Sequence record: MT710307.1
Direction: 5' to 3' (one strand)
Length of the DNA: 64,000 nucleotides
This document shows, in pieces, positions 41,132 to 48,461 of this stretch (position 1 is the first letter of the stretch; each line of letters begins with the position of its first letter). A program made the position numbers and the translations under genes. The notes below the pieces were generated by a model that did not search any database, was not told the origin of the DNA, and was given only the letters and a program-made list of their open reading frames with translations.

Positions 41132-41168
41132 GTCCTACTCCTTCGGGAGTAGGACTGTTTTATTTTTT
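41132..41168 (+). terminator. Intrinsic terminator (UUCG)
   Basis: GTCCTACTCC-TTCG-GGAGTAGGAC plus T-tract. Confidence 0.9.
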
Positions 41169-41179
41169 AAGGACTGTCG

Positions 41180-41707
41180 ATGACTACTTTTATTGCGGGC
41201 AAGAACTACCTCGCCGCAGACCGTGCGGTAATGAAAAACCGAATGGTATTTGAAGATGCGAAGATTCGCACTATCAAAGGGCGCATCGCGTACTTCTTTG
41301 GTTCAGAGCATCCCACGCCAGACGAACGCAAGTTGCTGGAAAAGCATATCTACGATTACATCTTCGGTAAGCAGAAAGCCCAAGAGGCAGCAGAGCTGTG
41401 GTTGCTGCACTTCATGGAAAGCAATACGCTGGTTGTGATGACCCGCAAGAAGACGCTGACCTTCAGTGCTATCTCACGGCTTGCTGCGTGGTCGCCGGAG
41501 CTGGGTGCCCCAACCCGCCATACAGGACTTACTGTAACCGAAGACCTGCTTGAAACACCTGTCGTTTATGGCTCGGGTGCAGAGTTGGCACGGGCAGGAT
41601 GGGCATGCGGATTACCGCCTGAGAACATCATTCTCATGGTACAGAAAATAGACCCGATGTCAGGGCATGGCTGCGATGTGGTTTACAGAGAGGACTTGCG
41701 AAAATGA
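41180..41707 (+). CDS. HslV/proteasome-beta-like Ntn threonine peptidase
   Basis: M-TT start, LAAD, AKI (catalytic Lys equivalent), YGSG, and D-P-M-SG near C-end, the canonical order in Thr proteases. Confidence 0.7.
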   Translation: MTTFIAGKNYLAADRAVMKNRMVFEDAKIRTIKGRIAYFFGSEHPTPDERKLLEKHIYDYIFGKQKAQEAAELWLLHFMESNTLVVMTRKKTLTFSAISRLAAWSPELGAPTRHTGLTVTEDLLETPVVYGSGAELARAGWACGLPPENIILMVQKIDPMSGHGCDVVYREDLRK

Positions 41708-42252
41708 GTACCGTTTCTATTGCTGGTTTCGTTGTGAATGGTGTGGTCTACGTCAACACCGCTGTTCAATCCATGCACCTGATGGCACCGTACAACCCCG
41801 AGGCGGGGTTCGATAAACTCGGGTGGTGGTTCCCGAACGACGGACAAGAAAAAATCAGTGACATCTTGGTTAATGGGGACGATTGCGAACGCCATGAGGA
41901 CATTACCTACTCCGGTAGTGTGCTGCGTCACGATGGTCGATTCTACGATGTTAAATTGGCCGGGCCAAACTATCGATTAACTTTCCTCCATCAACCAACC
42001 TCCGTGATGGTCTTTCCAGCCGATACGGAATCGGCGTTTGTGGCGACCTTTATCGAGCACCTGTCCATGCACCCCGATTTGGACACCGAAGGGCCTGAGT
42101 GGAGTGCAGAGCGTATCACGAAGATATTGTCGTGCTTCGGAGGCTGCCACAACTTCATCCCTTTCATGACTCTGGATGAACTCAAAGCCAAAGTCCAAGC
42201 GATGCCAGAGTGTAAATTAGCGCCCTTCCCCCGCCAAAGAAAGCCGGAATAA
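41704..42252 (+). CDS. Hypothetical protein, possible degenerate Ntn-fold partner (182 aa)
   Basis: ATGA-coupled to peptidase, similar size, MSTVSIAGFVVNGVVYVNT resembles the S1-S2 strands; GSG and D..SG absent. Confidence 0.35.
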   Translation: MSTVSIAGFVVNGVVYVNTAVQSMHLMAPYNPEAGFDKLGWWFPNDGQEKISDILVNGDDCERHEDITYSGSVLRHDGRFYDVKLAGPNYRLTFLHQPTSVMVFPADTESAFVATFIEHLSMHPDLDTEGPEWSAERITKILSCFGGCHNFIPFMTLDELKAKVQAMPECKLAPFPRQRKPE

Positions 42253-42313
42253 GAACGCGCAGATTTATAACAACATCACCCCTTTTAATGACAAACACAA
42301 GAGGATTATCATC

Positions 42314-42925
42314 ATGCAATCTGTAGCTCATGCGTTATCCCCAGTTACGTTTCCAAAGTTCACCGGTCTGCAAGTCTACATGTTGCAAGCCACCGCAGGG
42401 ACGCTCGCCGATGTAGCGCCTGAAGGTTATCGTGACCTCGTTAGCAACATGCTGAAAGATGGTAACATTCCTGCGGACACACAGGTCTGGCTGACGGTTG
42501 ATGAGTCGAACGTCAAAGCCGGTAAGAAGCAACGTCGTGGCGGTGCACACATCGATGGCAACTACGACCTCTTTGCGGGTGACTGGTGCACCGGTAGTTC
42601 TGGCTGGTTAAACGGGGTGCCGGGACGTGAACTGACGCTTGAAGAACACCATCGCAGTTATCAGGAGTTCGGTGGTGGGATGCTGATTGCCTCCAACCAT
42701 GCAGCCTGTCAGGTGTGGGAAGGGGAAGTGAACGGTATTCCTGGTCAAGGTGGCGACTGTGAGCATCTTCGTGACCAACTGGAAACGCTCCCGACCTATC
42801 TGATGGAAAGTAACCGAACGTACCTGACGAACTCACAGTGTGTGCACGAGTCGTTACCATTAAAAGTTGACTTTCCACGTCAGCTTGTGCGCATCACCCT
42901 GTCCGAGCAGTACAAATTTAACTAA
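42314..42925 (+). CDS. 2OG-Fe(II) dioxygenase-like protein
   Basis: RRGGAHIDG (HxD), CVHESLP (distal His), RQLVRIT (2OG-binding Arg). Confidence 0.7.
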   Translation: MQSVAHALSPVTFPKFTGLQVYMLQATAGTLADVAPEGYRDLVSNMLKDGNIPADTQVWLTVDESNVKAGKKQRRGGAHIDGNYDLFAGDWCTGSSGWLNGVPGRELTLEEHHRSYQEFGGGMLIASNHAACQVWEGEVNGIPGQGGDCEHLRDQLETLPTYLMESNRTYLTNSQCVHESLPLKVDFPRQLVRITLSEQYKFN

Positions 42926-42951
42926 TCTAAAACCACAAAGAGAATCAGAAC

Positions 42952-43614
42952 ATGGCGAAGCAAAAGAAAGTACGGAACAAAAAATATAACCCGCAGCAAG
43001 CCCACGCAGAAACAGCCCGTATGGTGGTACAAAACTCATTAGCACGTATCTCCTTTATTGGTGCGTCTAACCGTCGTATTCAACCGTACGGCGGCCGCGG
43101 CTTCCAATTCACCGTCAGTCGTCCGGTACGGGTAACGGTCAGTGCAGCATTGGCTGAAACACTGTTCGAAGACCCACGGACATGGTCGGTGTGGATGGCG
43201 CATTATGCTGTTAATGCGGAAGGTGCCGTGGATGTGGAGTCTGGCGTTCTTCGCTTAGACGAATATACCTTGACTGACTTCACGGAAAACGTAGACAAGT
43301 TAGTGGAGCACATGAAACCTGAACACATGATGGATAACCCGGACTACGTGGGCTATGCATTCTTTGCTTCACCGAATGAGCGTTACGATTTCACGCACGA
43401 CACCACGGACGAACGTTTGATTGAAAACTTCATGGCGTCGGGTGTGTTAGAGAAAGAGAACCATCTTCCGCAACACGTTCTGAATGTTACCAAAGAAGAA
43501 CTTATTATCATGCTCATGGCAGACCACGCCAAGTTTGATACCAACATCAGTATTCACCAGCGCGGCGAAGGTGATGATTACCAAGTCGCAAATAAGCAAG
43601 TTATCGGAGAGTAA
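42952..43614 (+). CDS. Hypothetical protein with basic KKVRNKKYNP N-terminus (220 aa)
   Basis: ORF in operon upstream of HslU. Confidence 0.7.
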   Translation: MAKQKKVRNKKYNPQQAHAETARMVVQNSLARISFIGASNRRIQPYGGRGFQFTVSRPVRVTVSAALAETLFEDPRTWSVWMAHYAVNAEGAVDVESGVLRLDEYTLTDFTENVDKLVEHMKPEHMMDNPDYVGYAFFASPNERYDFTHDTTDERLIENFMASGVLEKENHLPQHVLNVTKEELIIMLMADHAKFDTNISIHQRGEGDDYQVANKQVIGE

Positions 43615-43617
43615 GAA

Positions 43618-44184
43618 ATGAAGTTCTGGGAGCGCTTTTGTCGCTTGTTTAAAGATGTCCCTGAGGCCCAGTCCGACGGTGACCGTTATACCCAAATCGT
43701 GCGTGACTACTTCAATGCAGGTAATCACAACGTCGTGGAACTCTGTGATGCCATTGGCATGACACCGCGCTCACTGTACTTTGCGGTTAACGACGACAAC
43801 GTCCGGGCGAACATTCTGCCCCGCCTCCCTGAAAAGATGCGGATGGAATTGCGTGATGAGCTGACCGCGCGTGCGTTCAGTCGTCAGGCCGTCTCGTTAA
43901 TTCGTCCGAGCACCGCGAAGTACGATTTTGACAACCTCAATGAGTTACTGGCACACGTACACGAATTGTTCGAAACCTACCGCATCGAACGTGGCGAGAA
44001 AGTGGACCCCTCTATCAAGGCGTACATCCACTCTCTTACACCGCGTACGGTGCGTATTGCCTTCGTAGGCAGTGGTCACGAATTCAATGTGGGTATCATT
44101 GAAGGTATTAACGTTGTGCAGCAAAACCTGCTTATGGTGAATTATGGAAAACTTAACGCCCGTGGAAATCGTCAATGTTTTTAA
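43618..44184 (+). CDS. Hypothetical protein (188 aa)
   Basis: GGAG RBS; 41-nt overlap with HslU. Confidence 0.7.
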   Translation: MKFWERFCRLFKDVPEAQSDGDRYTQIVRDYFNAGNHNVVELCDAIGMTPRSLYFAVNDDNVRANILPRLPEKMRMELRDELTARAFSRQAVSLIRPSTAKYDFDNLNELLAHVHELFETYRIERGEKVDPSIKAYIHSLTPRTVRIAFVGSGHEFNVGIIEGINVVQQNLLMVNYGKLNARGNRQCF

Positions 44185-45877
44185 CCGTTATGTCCACGGT
44201 CAAGAACTGGCGAAAAAGATGTTGGCGATTGCTCTGCGTAACCGCGTACGGGTAGCATTGCTACCCCTCGGTGAACGTAACAGCGTTCGTAAACAGAATC
44301 TGTTGTTACTGGGGCCAACTGGCTGCGGTAAAACGGCGCTGATGCGCGTACTGAAAACGCAGTTTGGGTTACCTGTCTTAGAGCAGGACATGACGGGCTT
44401 CTCCGAGACGGGCTACGTGGGGCGTAATCTCAATACCGTGGGGACGGACTTACAAACCCTCACGCGTACAATCGCTTTGCCGGACTGGTACGTAGAAATG
44501 CGCACCGGAATGCAACTCGAAAAAGACGAGCAGCGCTATACCCGCGAAGAACTCAAAGCGTTAGAAGAGAAAGAGTACGAAGTGGAAAGTGCTGCACGCC
44601 AAGCGGAATGGGAAGCAGGACGTGATGCTAAAAAGCAACACGAACAAACCCTGAAAGACTTGGGCGTGTTCCCGGACGATGATACGTACAACCATTATCG
44701 CATGGTCTATTACATGCGTGCGTTTTTGGTGGGGTATCATGCACTAAAGAACCTGCCGTACGATGTCATTGATTTCGCGGATATCGAAATGATTCATGGG
44801 CAGAAGCTCATTGATGTCGCGAAGACTGTGGTTGGCCTTGTCGAGAAAATGGCGGGTAGACCGATCAACAGTATCGATGACCTCAATGAGGATCTCAGCG
44901 ACCGCACCGATGAGATGATGGAGAACAACCCCGCGTTGTTAGGCGAGTTCATGGGACTGATGGCCTACAACGAAGTGCTGGAAGCCATTATGGAACTTGG
45001 CACCGATCGCCTCAGCAGTAACCCAGTGGCGGCCTGTGTCTCCTCTGGTGACTGGTACGACGTCGCGCACTCTTTCGATGAAGCTGATGAACGTGACATC
45101 CCGCCCGGCATTGCTTGGCGTCCGATGGACTTCACGGAGTTTGCGCTCTACATCTGTGTGATGTTGGTGCGTGACCCGGAAGGTCTGGAGGAAGTCTTCG
45201 AAGACTGTGATGACTTCACCCGCTTTGCCGACAAGAAACTTTGGAGCTACACCGTCCCTAAACCGGAAGTGGTGCAGCCTAAAGGGAAGCGCAATGTGTT
45301 GTCGAAGAAAGACCTCGACAAGGTGGCGAACTGTAACGGTCGCGACTTCGTGGAGAATTTCGGTGTGGTGTTCTTAGATGAGATTGACAAACTCATTGAA
45401 ACGGATACCACGGGACGGACACATGTCTCCCGCAGTGGTGTGCAGCGCAGTCTGCTCAAGATGGTAGAAGGTGGCCTCTATGCTGGGATTGACACCACGA
45501 ACATTTTGTTTATTGGTGCTGGTTCGTTCGCAGAAGCCCCAGTGACCAAACTGATGCCAGAGTTGCAAGGTCGGTTTACGTTGCGTGCGGAAATGGAACC
45601 ACTTGACAAAGAAGCGATGATCGCAATTTGTCGAATGGACAGCAGCGAGTTCCATGCGATGGTGCGTCTCTTGCGAATCGAAGGGGTGAAAGTCAATTAC
45701 GACCTTGACACCTTTGAGTACATTGCAGAGAAAACCGTTGAAGCAAACTCGGTCGATGACCTCGGTGCACGCCGTTTAGCCGCGATTGTCGAAGCGTTGT
45801 TCCAAGATGCGTTGTACGAACCCAACAAATACACCGACAAAGGTTATGACCTGACTGGTCAGAACCTAAGGAAGTAA
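44144..45877 (+). CDS. hslU: HslU (ClpY)-like AAA+ ATPase
   Basis: TPVEIV..GQELAKKMLAIALRNR, GPTGCGKT, GYVG pore loop, VFLDEIDK, GVQRSLL..VEG, PELQGRF, GARRL. Confidence 0.92.
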   Translation: MENLTPVEIVNVFNRYVHGQELAKKMLAIALRNRVRVALLPLGERNSVRKQNLLLLGPTGCGKTALMRVLKTQFGLPVLEQDMTGFSETGYVGRNLNTVGTDLQTLTRTIALPDWYVEMRTGMQLEKDEQRYTREELKALEEKEYEVESAARQAEWEAGRDAKKQHEQTLKDLGVFPDDDTYNHYRMVYYMRAFLVGYHALKNLPYDVIDFADIEMIHGQKLIDVAKTVVGLVEKMAGRPINSIDDLNEDLSDRTDEMMENNPALLGEFMGLMAYNEVLEAIMELGTDRLSSNPVAACVSSGDWYDVAHSFDEADERDIPPGIAWRPMDFTEFALYICVMLVRDPEGLEEVFEDCDDFTRFADKKLWSYTVPKPEVVQPKGKRNVLSKKDLDKVANCNGRDFVENFGVVFLDEIDKLIETDTTGRTHVSRSGVQRSLLKMVEGGLYAGIDTTNILFIGAGSFAEAPVTKLMPELQGRFTLRAEMEPLDKEAMIAICRMDSSEFHAMVRLLRIEGVKVNYDLDTFEYIAEKTVEANSVDDLGARRLAAIVEALFQDALYEPNKYTDKGYDLTGQNLRK

Positions 45878-45879
45878 TA

Positions 45880-46077
45880 ATGCTTGCGATCATCGTAGCA
45901 ATTATCATTGGCTTTTTGATGCTCAGTGTATTGGGTATCTGGATTGCCAAAGTTTCTATACGGTATCACTGGCCGTGGTGGGTTATGTTAGTAGTGGCGC
46001 TGGCACTCGGCGGTCTTCTCGGCAACGTTTACTTTAACTTCGTTATTGTACCACTTTATCAAAATATCGGAAATTGA
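45880..46077 (+). CDS. Small 2-TM membrane protein (65 aa)
   Basis: Two hydrophobic stretches. Confidence 0.7.
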   Translation: MLAIIVAIIIGFLMLSVLGIWIAKVSIRYHWPWWVMLVVALALGGLLGNVYFNFVIVPLYQNIGN

Positions 46078-46081
46078 GAAC

Positions 46082-46555
46082 ATGGAAAAGAAAACTGAAC
46101 GTAACTTGATTGAAATCACAGGCAAGGGCGAAGACAACAACGGCAAGTTCTACTCGGTCGTGTTGTTAGACCAAACCAGAATGAATGCAAACGGTAACCA
46201 ATATAACGGTGATATTGCACATCTGGTGCGGGGTATCAAACGTATGCCGCGACTGTTCTGTGAAATTGACCCGTACCACGATTACCGTTTTCAGTACCCG
46301 GTAAGCGATGACCGTTCTGTGTCCGGACCATGCACCATTGATAACCGCAACGTTTGCGCATCTATCGAAAACATCCGTCACGATAAGATGAACAAGCGTG
46401 TATCCGCCGAGTTGCGTCCGTGGGGACCACATGCCTCTATGGTGCGTGATTTGATGGATGGGGTAAACCAGAACGTGACCTTCGGGATGCGTGCACTGGC
46501 AACCCCTGATGGCAAGATTGATAAAGTCATCACATGGGATTTATTACCAGAATGA
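46082..46555 (+). CDS. Prohead-protease-like protein (phiKZ gp175/T4 gp21 fold), probably inactive
   Basis: NANGNQY, FCEIDP (vs GExGHP), RPWGPH...NVTFGMRA (vs NVxFSxR), ITWD. Confidence 0.6.
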   Translation: MEKKTERNLIEITGKGEDNNGKFYSVVLLDQTRMNANGNQYNGDIAHLVRGIKRMPRLFCEIDPYHDYRFQYPVSDDRSVSGPCTIDNRNVCASIENIRHDKMNKRVSAELRPWGPHASMVRDLMDGVNQNVTFGMRALATPDGKIDKVITWDLLPE

Positions 46556-46752
46556 ATATCGCCGAACTGTTCTACTGGGTTACCATGGTGTTAAGCGGGT
46601 ATTTCCTTATCGTGATTGCCATTGACATGGTTAAGGATTTACTCAAGGGCGACCTGATGGGTGTGCTCGTTTTGATCGTGTTTGCTATCATCATCTGGAA
46701 CGTCCACCGTTGGGCGTTCGTAAGACTGGTGCCGTTGCAGACATTGTTCTAA
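46552..46752 (+). CDS. Small 2-TM membrane protein (66 aa)
   Basis: ATGA coupling; two hydrophobic helices. Confidence 0.7.
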   Translation: MNIAELFYWVTMVLSGYFLIVIAIDMVKDLLKGDLMGVLVLIVFAIIIWNVHRWAFVRLVPLQTLF

Positions 46753-46764
46753 TGAAAAAAAGCT

Positions 46765-46785
46765 CAGATAGATATTATCTTGATG
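46765..46785 (+). promoter_or_regulatory. Putative early promoter
   Basis: CAGATAGATATTATCTTGATG. Confidence 0.65.
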
Positions 46786-46858
46786 AGCTTTCCATTATTA
46801 GTTCCAAGGAAGGTGCGTTTTACAATTACAATAAATTAAAATAAATAAGGAGTCCATC

Positions 46859-47035
46859 ATGGATAAAATTTATATCGTTACAGCAATCCTCTTCACAATC
46901 GCTTGCTTACTCAGCTGGCGCGTATCATCCAACATGAAACGTCGTAAGTGCCCACCGGGTGCACTCGCGTTTGGTGTTCAAGCCTGTGTTTATGGTTTTG
47001 TGGCCATCTACACCGGTGCGAAGTATTTCATCTAG
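46859..47035 (+). CDS. Small early 2-TM membrane protein (58 aa; not in ORF track)
   Basis: MDKIYIVTAILFTIACLLSWRVSSNMKRRKCPPGALAFGVQACVYGFVAIYTGAKYFI; AAGGAG RBS. Confidence 0.75.
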   Translation: MDKIYIVTAILFTIACLLSWRVSSNMKRRKCPPGALAFGVQACVYGFVAIYTGAKYFI

Positions 47036-47040
47036 CAGTA

Positions 47041-47072
47041 AAAAGGGCACGGAAGTGTCCTTTTTCTTTTTT
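47041..47072 (+). terminator. Intrinsic terminator (GGAA loop)
   Basis: AAAAGGGCAC-GGAA-GTGTCCTTTT plus T-tract. Confidence 0.8.
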
Positions 47073-47092: not shown

Positions 47093-48157
47093 ATGCCACG
47101 TCTCTTAGCGTTCACCGGTGGAGTTGATTCCACATGGGTGTTACAGAAGTTAATTCAACAACCGTCTGCGGATGGCGGTGAAGTAATCCATCCGGTCTAC
47201 ATGGATTTCTATCAAGGTTCTCCGGCAGCCATTGTCGAGTTCCTGCTGGGCAGCGAAATTGCTCTGCGGCTGTTAAAGCACAACAAAGACAATTATAAAG
47301 AGCCGCTGGAGTGGCGCTCACCTCCGCTGCAAATCTTCACGAGCTGTATCATCGGTCGTTCAAGCGGAAATGAAAGTCGCCTGATTCAACAGGGTAACAC
47401 TGTGTTGGGTTTGGCACACCTGATGAATGCGGTGCAAGCACGCCATCCGGGGTCTACCGCCTTAACCGGTTGGAACAAAGCCGACTTCATTGAAAGCAGT
47501 GCGCTGCAAGGTGAGTGGTCGGAAGAAGACTACTTGCGCCTGAAGAAACTCTACAGTGAAATGATGTTCTTCCAAGACCATCACTATCGCTGTTCTCCGC
47601 TTCTCACCCCGGCGTGGGATATGGAGAAGAAAGACATGTGGGATGCACTCCCGGCTGATGTGCAAGAACTGATCACTGTGTGTTCAACCTACATGTTTAA
47701 GATTTACCATGTTAAGTCCGAGAACGCGCTGTACATCTCCTGTAACCCAGAACACTTCGGTAAGTCTGTGCGGTATCTGGCCCGTGGGATTAACCTCACG
47801 GCAGCGTGGCGTATCGCGATTGATGACGAGTTCCATCGTCGACTCAACACGGACAATGTCCCGAGTAACCACTTCGCTGGAAGCTTCCCCAGTGAGCTGC
47901 TGTCCTCATCAGAAACAAGACACCGACCATCGTTGCGTATGCGTTCCGATGACCGTAACCTGCAAATCGAAGCCTACAGTATCGATGAGTGGAAAACGAA
48001 GTTTGACCATGTAGAAGATATGCTAAAGGTGGAACGTGAGCGAGAACAAGCCGAGTACCGCGCCCAGCGAGAAAAAGAGAAAGCTGAAAATCCGGACAGT
48101 CCAAATCGCGAAGTGGCGGAAGGCGAAGTCGCTGCATCCAGCAGTGTCGCTGATTGA
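47093..48157 (+). CDS. PP-loop ATP pyrophosphatase, QueC-like (divergent)
   Basis: N-terminal LLAFTGGVDSTW PP-loop, PVYMDFYQ, TGWNKAD, LLTPAWDMEKKDMW; canonical QueC Zn cysteines only partly present. Confidence 0.65.
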   Translation: MPRLLAFTGGVDSTWVLQKLIQQPSADGGEVIHPVYMDFYQGSPAAIVEFLLGSEIALRLLKHNKDNYKEPLEWRSPPLQIFTSCIIGRSSGNESRLIQQGNTVLGLAHLMNAVQARHPGSTALTGWNKADFIESSALQGEWSEEDYLRLKKLYSEMMFFQDHHYRCSPLLTPAWDMEKKDMWDALPADVQELITVCSTYMFKIYHVKSENALYISCNPEHFGKSVRYLARGINLTAAWRIAIDDEFHRRLNTDNVPSNHFAGSFPSELLSSSETRHRPSLRMRSDDRNLQIEAYSIDEWKTKFDHVEDMLKVEREREQAEYRAQREKEKAENPDSPNREVAEGEVAASSSVAD

Positions 48158-48461
48158 TGTCACGGTCAAATCCGGTATCAAAGCCTTAGCCCCAACGTGG
48201 GACTTTTTGATGGAGTACAAGAACTCCGACAAAGGCCCCGAGGCTGAGGATGCCTACACGAAAAAATATAAAAGCAGAATCCAACAACTCAAACAGGATG
48301 ACCCTGATGTGATGTTGGAACTGCTGTATCAGGATGAGATTATTCTGATGTGTTATTGCCCGGCCGGGAAGTTCTGTCACCGGCTTTTATTAGTTGATGA
48401 GTTCAAAGCCTTAGGCGATGAACATAATGTCGAAGTAATCTACGAAGGAGAAATAACATGA
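48036..48461 (+). CDS. DUF488-like protein
   Basis: IDVTVKSG..LAPTWDFLMEYK and ILMCYCPAGKFCHRLLL; overlaps QueC-like gene by 122 nt. Confidence 0.7.
   Translation: MSENKPSTAPSEKKRKLKIRTVQIAKWRKAKSLHPAVSLIDVTVKSGIKALAPTWDFLMEYKNSDKGPEAEDAYTKKYKSRIQQLKQDDPDVMLELLYQDEIILMCYCPAGKFCHRLLLVDEFKALGDEHNVEVIYEGEIT

Follow-up and report, generated by a model that had tools for sequence, protein, structure and literature searches.

A co-inherited HslV-like peptidase gene pair and an independently inherited, tail-less HslU-like ATPase in a gene block of Salmonella jumbo phage pSal-SNUABM-04

Introduction

Bacterial HslVU (ClpQY) is a two-component protease, and a 5.6-kb gene block of Salmonella phage pSal-SNUABM-04 raises the question of whether a jumbo phage carries such a machine of its own. 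The block lies within a 64,000-nucleotide stretch of DNA (the window) from GenBank record MT710307.1 and is 100% identical to the genome of that phage (239,626 bp, Machinavirus). It contains nine plus-strand open reading frames (ORFs), all correctly placed by a first-pass annotation of the window, which are ORFs 116 to 124 of the record (gp116 to gp124; Table 1; record coordinates are window coordinates plus 62,000). That annotation had read them as a proteasome-like machine owned by the phage, built on an HslV-like peptidase and an HslU ATPase and perhaps equipped with substrate adaptors and membrane anchors. Here we show that the peptidase gene, gp116, is truly co-inherited with a partner gene, gp117, and that the HslU-like gene, gp121, is inherited independently of this pair. 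We argue, at a probability of roughly 55%, that this block, part of the non-structural region of an SPN3US-like jumbo phage, is not one integrated machine but a mosaic whose accessory units were inherited separately.

Parts of this inventory were already on record. Phage proteasome homologues (PPH, AAH and CPH) have been described by Fuchs et al. 2021 (PMC8665760), and the 2020 genome paper of pSal-SNUABM-04 placed HslV at ORFs 1 and 116 and detected no HslU (PMC7823757). The GenBank record notes the HslV match of ORF116 and labels ORF121 as a putative DnaA protein, relatives carry the annotation 'putative heat shock protein / HslU', and Erwinia phage pEa_SNUABM_43 annotates both an HslV-like and an HslU-like protein. 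The first-pass expectation that annotators mostly leave the protease partner hypothetical was therefore only half right, HslV having been noted in the record, in the genome paper and in pEa_SNUABM_43. To our knowledge, none of the catalogued phage proteasome homologues has a known partner, substrate or role. What is new here is the conserved partner gene gp117 and the tail-less HslU, the HslV-like and HslU-like labels and the phage proteasome homologues being already known; we found no discussion in the literature of the gp116-gp117 pairing or of a tail-less HslU.

Results

gp116 gave no match in Pfam or in NCBIfam, including TIGR03692, where it falls below the curated HslV cut-off, and sequence and profile searches against the PDB did not find HslV; its homology to HslV is visible only through PHROG 1040 ('peptidase HslV family'), which it matches end to end with E=7.5e-10, and through its predicted fold. 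The family is small, with only 23 relatives found in an exhaustive profile search of 1.84 billion representative proteins. In the 23-sequence alignment residues T2, T3, D14, G131, G133, D158 and D166 are invariant and K28 is near-invariant, and gp116 carries a Gly-Ser-Gly motif at G131-S132-G133. The conserved residues share columns with Thr1, Asp17, Lys33, the Gly-Ser-Gly motif (Ser129) and the C-terminal Asp (Asp166) of Salmonella HslV.

The AlphaFold2 model of gp116 (predicted local distance difference test score, pLDDT, 89.9) retrieved from the PDB with Foldseek a top 50 made up entirely of HslV, 20S proteasome subunits or BPH (best E=3.5e-7, TM 0.55-0.60), with ~14-21% identity to solved HslVs at a TM of about 0.58. 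By alignment and predicted structure, gp116 is confirmed as a remote HslV homologue with an HslV/proteasome-beta N-terminal-threonine (Ntn) fold and a complete set of active-site residues. The first-pass call of an Ntn Thr-peptidase at this gene is borne out, and the Ntn fold on which that proposal hung is the one that the model adopts. gp116 resembles the PPH/PHROG 1040 proteins, which are phage-encoded, compact group-I proteasome-like Ntn proteins without a known dedicated unfoldase, and it matches phrog_1040 itself. By contrast with PPH, described as ~140 aa long and without helix H2 (PMC8665760), gp116 has 175 aa and its model contains both H1 and H2 (H47-62 and H65-79), a comparison made with PPH by description only. 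It also differs in belonging to a small separate family that is paired with gp117-like genes in most of its lineages.

This pairing is the most constant feature of the locus. Using hidden Markov model (HMM) searches of all retrieved loci, related ones among them located with a 9-member gp116-family alignment, we found a gp117-family gene directly 3′ of the gp116-family gene in nine of ten lineages, with match E-values from 1e-83 to 4e-3 and with the two frames overlapping or abutting in most of them. The nine are the Machina core, Derbicusvirus (CR5, Phobos and Derbicus), the IMG/VR group L012/13/16 and the loci L027, L030, L031, L032, L034 and L036; L035 is the sole exception. We conclude that gp116 and gp117 form a unit that is truly co-inherited.

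The first-pass description of gp117 as a coupled look-alike of gp116 holds for the coupling, the two frames sharing an ATGA overlap, but not for the likeness. A sequence resemblance to gp116 was dropped as profile-profile comparisons gave no signal (hhalign probability 0.1-0.3, in local and global mode, whether or not Salmonella HslV and ORF001, another HslV-like protein of the phage, were included), and the gp117 family alignment shows no conserved N-terminal Thr or Ser. The AlphaFold2 model of gp117 (pLDDT 85.3) has no significant Foldseek match in the PDB (best E=0.12, TM about 0.3), and 49 of the 50 top weak matches are 20S subunits or connectase. In BFVD, where its relatives come from Derbicus, PhiEaH1, RP12 and RSF1, gp117 weakly matches a 'Proteasome subunit beta' of CcrBL9 (E=0.16, TMt 0.50). 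The order of secondary-structure elements in the gp117 model parallels that in the gp116 model, and a degenerate proteasome-like fold is possible.

Two loci, from other jumbo-phage lineages, place the HslV-like gene elsewhere in the genome. At L034:10001-11046 and L035:10001-10561 it lies a few genes downstream of a phiKZ-type major capsid protein gene and not in the replication-side region; in L034, a 271-kb contig, a gp117-like partner follows the capsid-adjacent gene, and the L035 contig is 35 kb long. Because these HslV-like genes adjoin capsid genes, the cassette appears to be mobile between genome regions.

The best PDB sequence matches of gp121 are HslU chains (E=6e-48), ahead of ClpX, and it matches TIGR00390 (hslU) with E=1e-58, its 199.4 bits lying under the equivalog cut-off of 362.45. 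It carries the Walker A motif GPTGCGKT, the pore-1 loop GYVG, the Walker B motif DEIDK, the sensor-2 motif GARR and an Arg finger, and in the I-domain position between Walker A and Walker B it holds ~290 phage-specific residues with no sequence relation to the HslU I-domain. As judged from these matches and motifs, gp121 is an HslU-clade AAA+ ATPase, as the first-pass annotation had it, and not DnaA. The record is to be corrected at two points, in that ORF121 is HslU-like rather than DnaA and in that the phage does encode an HslU-like protein besides HslV; the genome paper's statement that there is no HslU was wrong because ORF121 had been called DnaA.

The similarity of gp121 to HslU ends before the C-terminus, the alignment stopping at residue 418 of 443 of Salmonella HslU in BLASTP and at position 419 of 441 of the TIGR00390 profile, which leaves gp121 short by ~25 residues. 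The HslU-like proteins of pEa_SNUABM_43, Caitlin, phage 1252, Wellington, CR5 and Phobos end at or within a few residues of host residue 418, and that of phage RAY has a longer, unrelated C-terminal extension instead of the docking tail, which is thus missing from all aligned phage HslU-like proteins. In bacteria, HslV is bound and activated through the C-terminal tail of HslU, which inserts between the HslV subunits (PMC6429459, PMC4106860). Because the tail is absent, the phage proteins would lack canonical HslV docking. The RAY protein, gp116 of that nucleus-forming Erwinia phage, belongs to the HslU family, resides in the phage nucleus and is encoded by an accessory rather than a core gene (Prichard et al. 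2023). Its homology to gp121 is distant (E=1.2e-43 with the phage HslU profile), and searches of RAY detected no HslV-like partner; the protein differs in being ~32% identical over the AAA+ parts only, in its other I-domain and in its long C-terminal extension, and the nuclear localisation is known for the RAY protein alone.

The distribution of the two units separates them. The pair and the HslU-like gene are neighbours in the Machina core, Derbicusvirus, L027 and L036. The HslU-like gene occurs without the pair in Caitlin and ChrisDB-type phages, in the SPN3US-like phage 1252, in Wellington and Kwan-type phages and in RAY, and a gp116-type gene or the pair occurs without an HslU-like gene in L012/13/16, L030, L032, L034 and L035 (downstream flanks of ~2-10 kb). 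In NZ_CP134650.1, a complete, circular sequence of 222,441 bp, gp116-like, gp117-like and second HslV-like genes are present, and hmmsearch with both HslU profiles and with every single HslU sequence detected no HslU-like protein among all 637 ORFs at E<=10. The HslU-like gene is inherited independently of the gp116-gp117 pair.

Two candidates for a concealed HslV-like partner were rejected. The 150-aa phrog_7413 proteins that take the equivalent place in Caitlin, phage 1252 and Wellington lack an N-terminal Thr and share none of the motifs, and gp117 and gp118 of RAY, two 179-aa genes directly after the RAY HslU gene, belong to unrelated PHROGs and gave no hit with the gp116 and gp117 profiles.

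NZ_CP134650.1 was deposited as Enterobacter ludwigii 'plasmid unnamed1' and is the genome of an L012-type jumbo phage that encodes an S80 prohead protease, tail fibres, DnaB and a family B DNA polymerase. Proteins closely related to its HslV-like protein (the cluster of P0010) occur on 110-224-kb contigs in many isolate assemblies of Salmonella, E. coli and Shigella, which suggests that a jumbo phage is stably carried, in a carrier state or by pseudolysogeny, in enterobacterial isolates.

The independent inheritance bears directly on the first-pass proposal, a dedicated phage HslUV-like ATP-dependent protease in which gp116, with or without gp117, works with gp121, the unknown proteins serve as adaptors and the proteins with two hydrophobic segments as anchors, and host defence proteins are degraded or phage assemblies remodelled. 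Part of this stands, as an active-site-complete HslV-like peptidase and an HslU-clade unfoldase do lie, both catalytic parts intact, in one terminator-bounded block, the pair adjoins the HslU-like gene in four lineages, and gp119 lies between them at most loci. The nine genes do not, however, form one co-evolving module, the expected co-conservation having largely failed: the HslV-like gene travels with gp117 and not with HslU, gp118, gp120 and gp122 to gp124 are variably present among relatives, and gp119, the most widely syntenic neighbour, is found at loci with and without HslU. With a complete genome that has the pair and no HslU, many phages that have HslU and no pair, an HslU-like protein devoid of the HslV-activating tail, and nothing found that points to adaptor or anchor roles, we consider such a dedicated machine unlikely.

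In comparison with bacterial HslVU, gp116 shares with HslV the Ntn fold, the N-terminal Thr and the Asp, Lys, Gly-Ser-Gly and Asp columns, and gp121 keeps the domain order of HslU, with an I-domain between Walker A and Walker B, together with GYVG and GARR. By contrast, the gp116 and gp121 genes are separated by four genes and are not co-conserved, gp121 has its own I-domain and no activating tail, both proteins score far under the equivalog cut-offs, and gp116 has a partner gene that bacterial HslV has not.

The phage also encodes a second HslV/PPH-like Ntn peptidase, ORF001 of the record (L010:1-474), which lies outside the window at a distance of ~100 kb. This 157-aa protein, starting MTTIAYDG and carrying a GSGG motif, is more canonical than gp116 and a more typical member of the PPH/PHROG 1040 group; conservation extends over Machina-, Caitlin-, phiEaH2- and SPN3US-type phages, and there are counterparts in 40-50-kb Klebsiella, Proteus and E. 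coli phages in which no HslU was detected. Because the ORF001 type occurs in such phages, phage HslV-like proteins are common without a phage HslU. One reading of this is that gp116 and gp117, and gp001 with them, use the tail-bearing HslU of the host, either retargeting it to substrates chosen by the phage or titrating it away from host HslV, with gp121 functionally unrelated. A Salmonella genome does encode hslVU with a full HslU C-terminal tail, the 222-kb Enterobacter element likewise has HslV-like proteins and no HslU of its own, and Fuchs et al. describe PPH with no phage unfoldase noted (PMC8665760). But at so low an identity and TM to solved HslVs, gp116 may have lost the pockets for the HslU tail, and BPH and other homologues function without an unfoldase (PMC8665760), so that recruitment of host HslU seems to us quite unlikely.

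Neighbouring genes and block boundaries

The remaining genes of the block are listed with their coordinates in Table 1. Packing is tight: gp116 and gp117 overlap by ATGA, as do gp123 and gp124, and gp120 and gp121 share 41 nt.

Table 1 Features of the block and its borders in window coordinates
Feature	Assignment	Position	Strand	Length (aa)	Basis or remark
Hairpin	Terminator-like, intrinsic type	41132..41155	+		10-bp stem, TTCG loop, T-run; closes upstream gene, marks block start
gp116	HslV/proteasome-beta-like Ntn peptidase, starts MTT	41180..41707	+	175	phrog_1040, family alignment, AlphaFold2/Foldseek
gp117	Partner of gp116, predicted non-catalytic	41704..42252	+	182	ATGA-overlapped start
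gp118	phrog_8970 jumbo-phage family	42314..42925	+	203	Family alignment
gp119	phrog_6965 protein	42952..43614	+		PHROG match, synteny
gp120	phrog_11712 protein	43618..44184	+		Overlaps start of HslU-like gene by 41 nt
gp121	HslU-clade AAA+ unfoldase (predicted)	44144..45877	+	577	PDB HslU, TIGR00390, multiple alignment; record label 'putative DnaA protein'
gp122	Two hydrophobic (membrane-spanning) segments	45880..46077	+	65	Sequence
gp123	Truncated S80 prohead-protease paralogue (SPN3US gp117 family)	46082..46555	+		PF20034, phrog_7478, gp249 alignment
gp124	Two hydrophobic (membrane-spanning) segments	46552..46752	+	66	Sequence; ATGA overlap with gp123
gp125	Small hydrophobic protein	46859..47035	+	58	Last gene ahead of second terminator
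Hairpin	Terminator-like	47040..47065	+		11-bp stem and T-run; block end

gp118 belongs to a family of 46 members, mostly on jumbo-phage-sized contigs, and at the retrieved syntenic loci it occurs in Machina-type phages and Caitlin only. Residues R74, R75, G77, H79, W98, C149, H178, R189 and R193 are invariant and D81 is nearly invariant in 26 sequences. The resulting HxD...H...R pattern is compatible, at motif level only, with the iron triad and the basic 2-oxoglutarate (2OG)-binding residue of a 2OG/Fe(II) oxygenase. No Pfam match was found in any of the 26 members and no profile match in the PDB, so the first-pass naming of gp118 as a 2OG oxygenase was not confirmed and amounts to a motif-level guess. 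The homologues of gp119 in L012, L027 and L007 share a strongly basic N-terminus, MAKxKKxRNKKY, that could be a nucleic-acid-binding or targeting tail, followed by a conserved domain with invariant R76, W78 and W81; a search of the PDB with the gp119 profile found nothing. A homologue of gp120 lies directly upstream of the HslU-like gene in Caitlin and Wellington.

Downstream of gp121, the two short hydrophobic proteins gp122 and gp124, called as two-segment membrane proteins in the first pass and found here with two such segments each, enclose gp123. This protein matches PF20034 (Peptidase_S80) with E=2.6e-7 and 30.5 bits against a cut-off of 23.4, over profile positions 83-175 of 229 only. 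With the catalytic His-Ser-Asp residues of S80 taken from Ali et al. 2017 (PMC5694885), the Ser column of gp123 holds Gly (FGMR, where gp249, the real prohead protease of the phage, has FSLR), there is no His in the aligned column, and the C-terminal prohead-targeting region seen in gp249 is absent. gp123 is, on its alignment, a paralogue of the prohead protease predicted to be dead through a Ser-to-Gly change, in agreement with the first-pass reading.

Short, C-terminally truncated S80 paralogues followed by a small gene are known as the SPN3US gp117 family, with SPN3US gp117/gp118, Kwan gp144 and Stratton gp135 as examples (Ali et al. 2017, PMC5694885), and gp123 fits this description; Machina and Caitlin have two copies, in the latter one long (258 aa) and one short. 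gp123 differs from SPN3US gp117, in which a Ser (S-126) is aligned at the Ser column (PMC5694885). Wellington also has an S80 paralogue, on the other side of HslU. pEa_SNUABM_43 has, between its two-segment membrane protein gene and its gp123 homologue, a second S80 paralogue of 242 aa (L002:8902-9630) that pSal-SNUABM-04 lacks (46077-46082), and because one phage has the copy and the other has not, this paralogue appears to be a recent gain or loss within the genus.

Strong terminator-like hairpins border the block, the upstream one where the first-pass annotation had set a terminator (41132). Its promoter at 46765 could not be supported, a search for sigma-70-type sites having found none there. 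Phages of this kind use their own RNA polymerases. At the same place, in the gap 3′ of gp124, lies an inverted repeat (AAGCTCA...TGAGCTT, ~46755-46792), perhaps a weak terminator or else a hairpin with a regulatory role. Just downstream, at 47093-48461, ORF126 and ORF127 of the record encode a QueC/ExsB-like protein (354 aa) and a DUF488 protein, and a Dam-type methylase (ORF108) lies upstream, so that the block is flanked by DNA-modification genes. DUF488 comes after the HslU position in many relatives, including those without HslU.

Discussion

The mosaic reading, to which we give roughly even odds or slightly better, divides the block into three units: a peptidase cassette of gp116 and gp117, an independently inherited tail-less gp121, and gp123 with the small membrane proteins. 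From folds, motifs, gene linkage and distribution we infer what these units assemble into, act on and work with. In gp116, removal of Met1 would expose the Thr nucleophile, and gp116 and the coupled gp117 may assemble into a self-compartmentalising particle whose peptidase activity breaks down proteins or peptides in the course of infection. The enlarged phage-specific I-domain of gp121 would act as a substrate selector. Because each unit occurs without the other, gp121 is most likely to be mainly a stand-alone unfoldase or remodeller, its RAY homologue being nuclear, and the gp116/gp117 peptidase would most likely work without a phage ATPase or with host HslU. Where both units occur, as in this phage, cooperation is possible through a non-canonical interface only; it is not required by the peptidase family and is not compatible with canonical docking.

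Several points weigh against separate units. In four lineages 2-3 kb separates the pair from an HslU-like gene of the same orientation, all within one tight block, as would be expected of functional partners. For the incomplete contigs (L030-L032, L034 and L035), the stretch found to be free of HslU spans only ~2-10 kb downstream, and in Wellington- and RAY-type phages tblastn may overlook HslV-like genes that have diverged far. The fold assignment of gp117 is below significance.

A bolder extension of the cassette is conceivable though doubtful. gp116 and gp117 might constitute a virus-encoded two-subunit proteasome-like particle, with a catalytic beta-like gp116 and a diverged, dead gp117 of the same fold, like the alpha and beta subunits of the 20S proteasome, that arose independently in jumbo phages and is fed in some lineages by the tail-less HslU-like unfoldase through a new docking mode. 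A non-degradative gp116, that is, a site-specific processing enzyme or ligase with a single phage or host protein as its target and gp117 as substrate or specificity subunit, is improbable: some members of the proteasome-like superfamily, connectase for one, are non-degradative (PMC8665760), connectase is among the weak structural matches of gp117, and gp116-type genes adjoin capsid genes in L034 and L035, but in structure gp116 is matched best by HslV and 20S subunits rather than connectase and the full proteasome-type residue set is conserved.

Host takeover, counter-defence and the phage nucleus are all touched by the question of whether a gp116/gp117 particle acts by itself, in concert with the phage HslU-like protein or in concert with host HslU. 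If gp116 and gp117 do form a hetero-oligomeric peptidase, they would offer insight into how large phages control protein turnover during infection.

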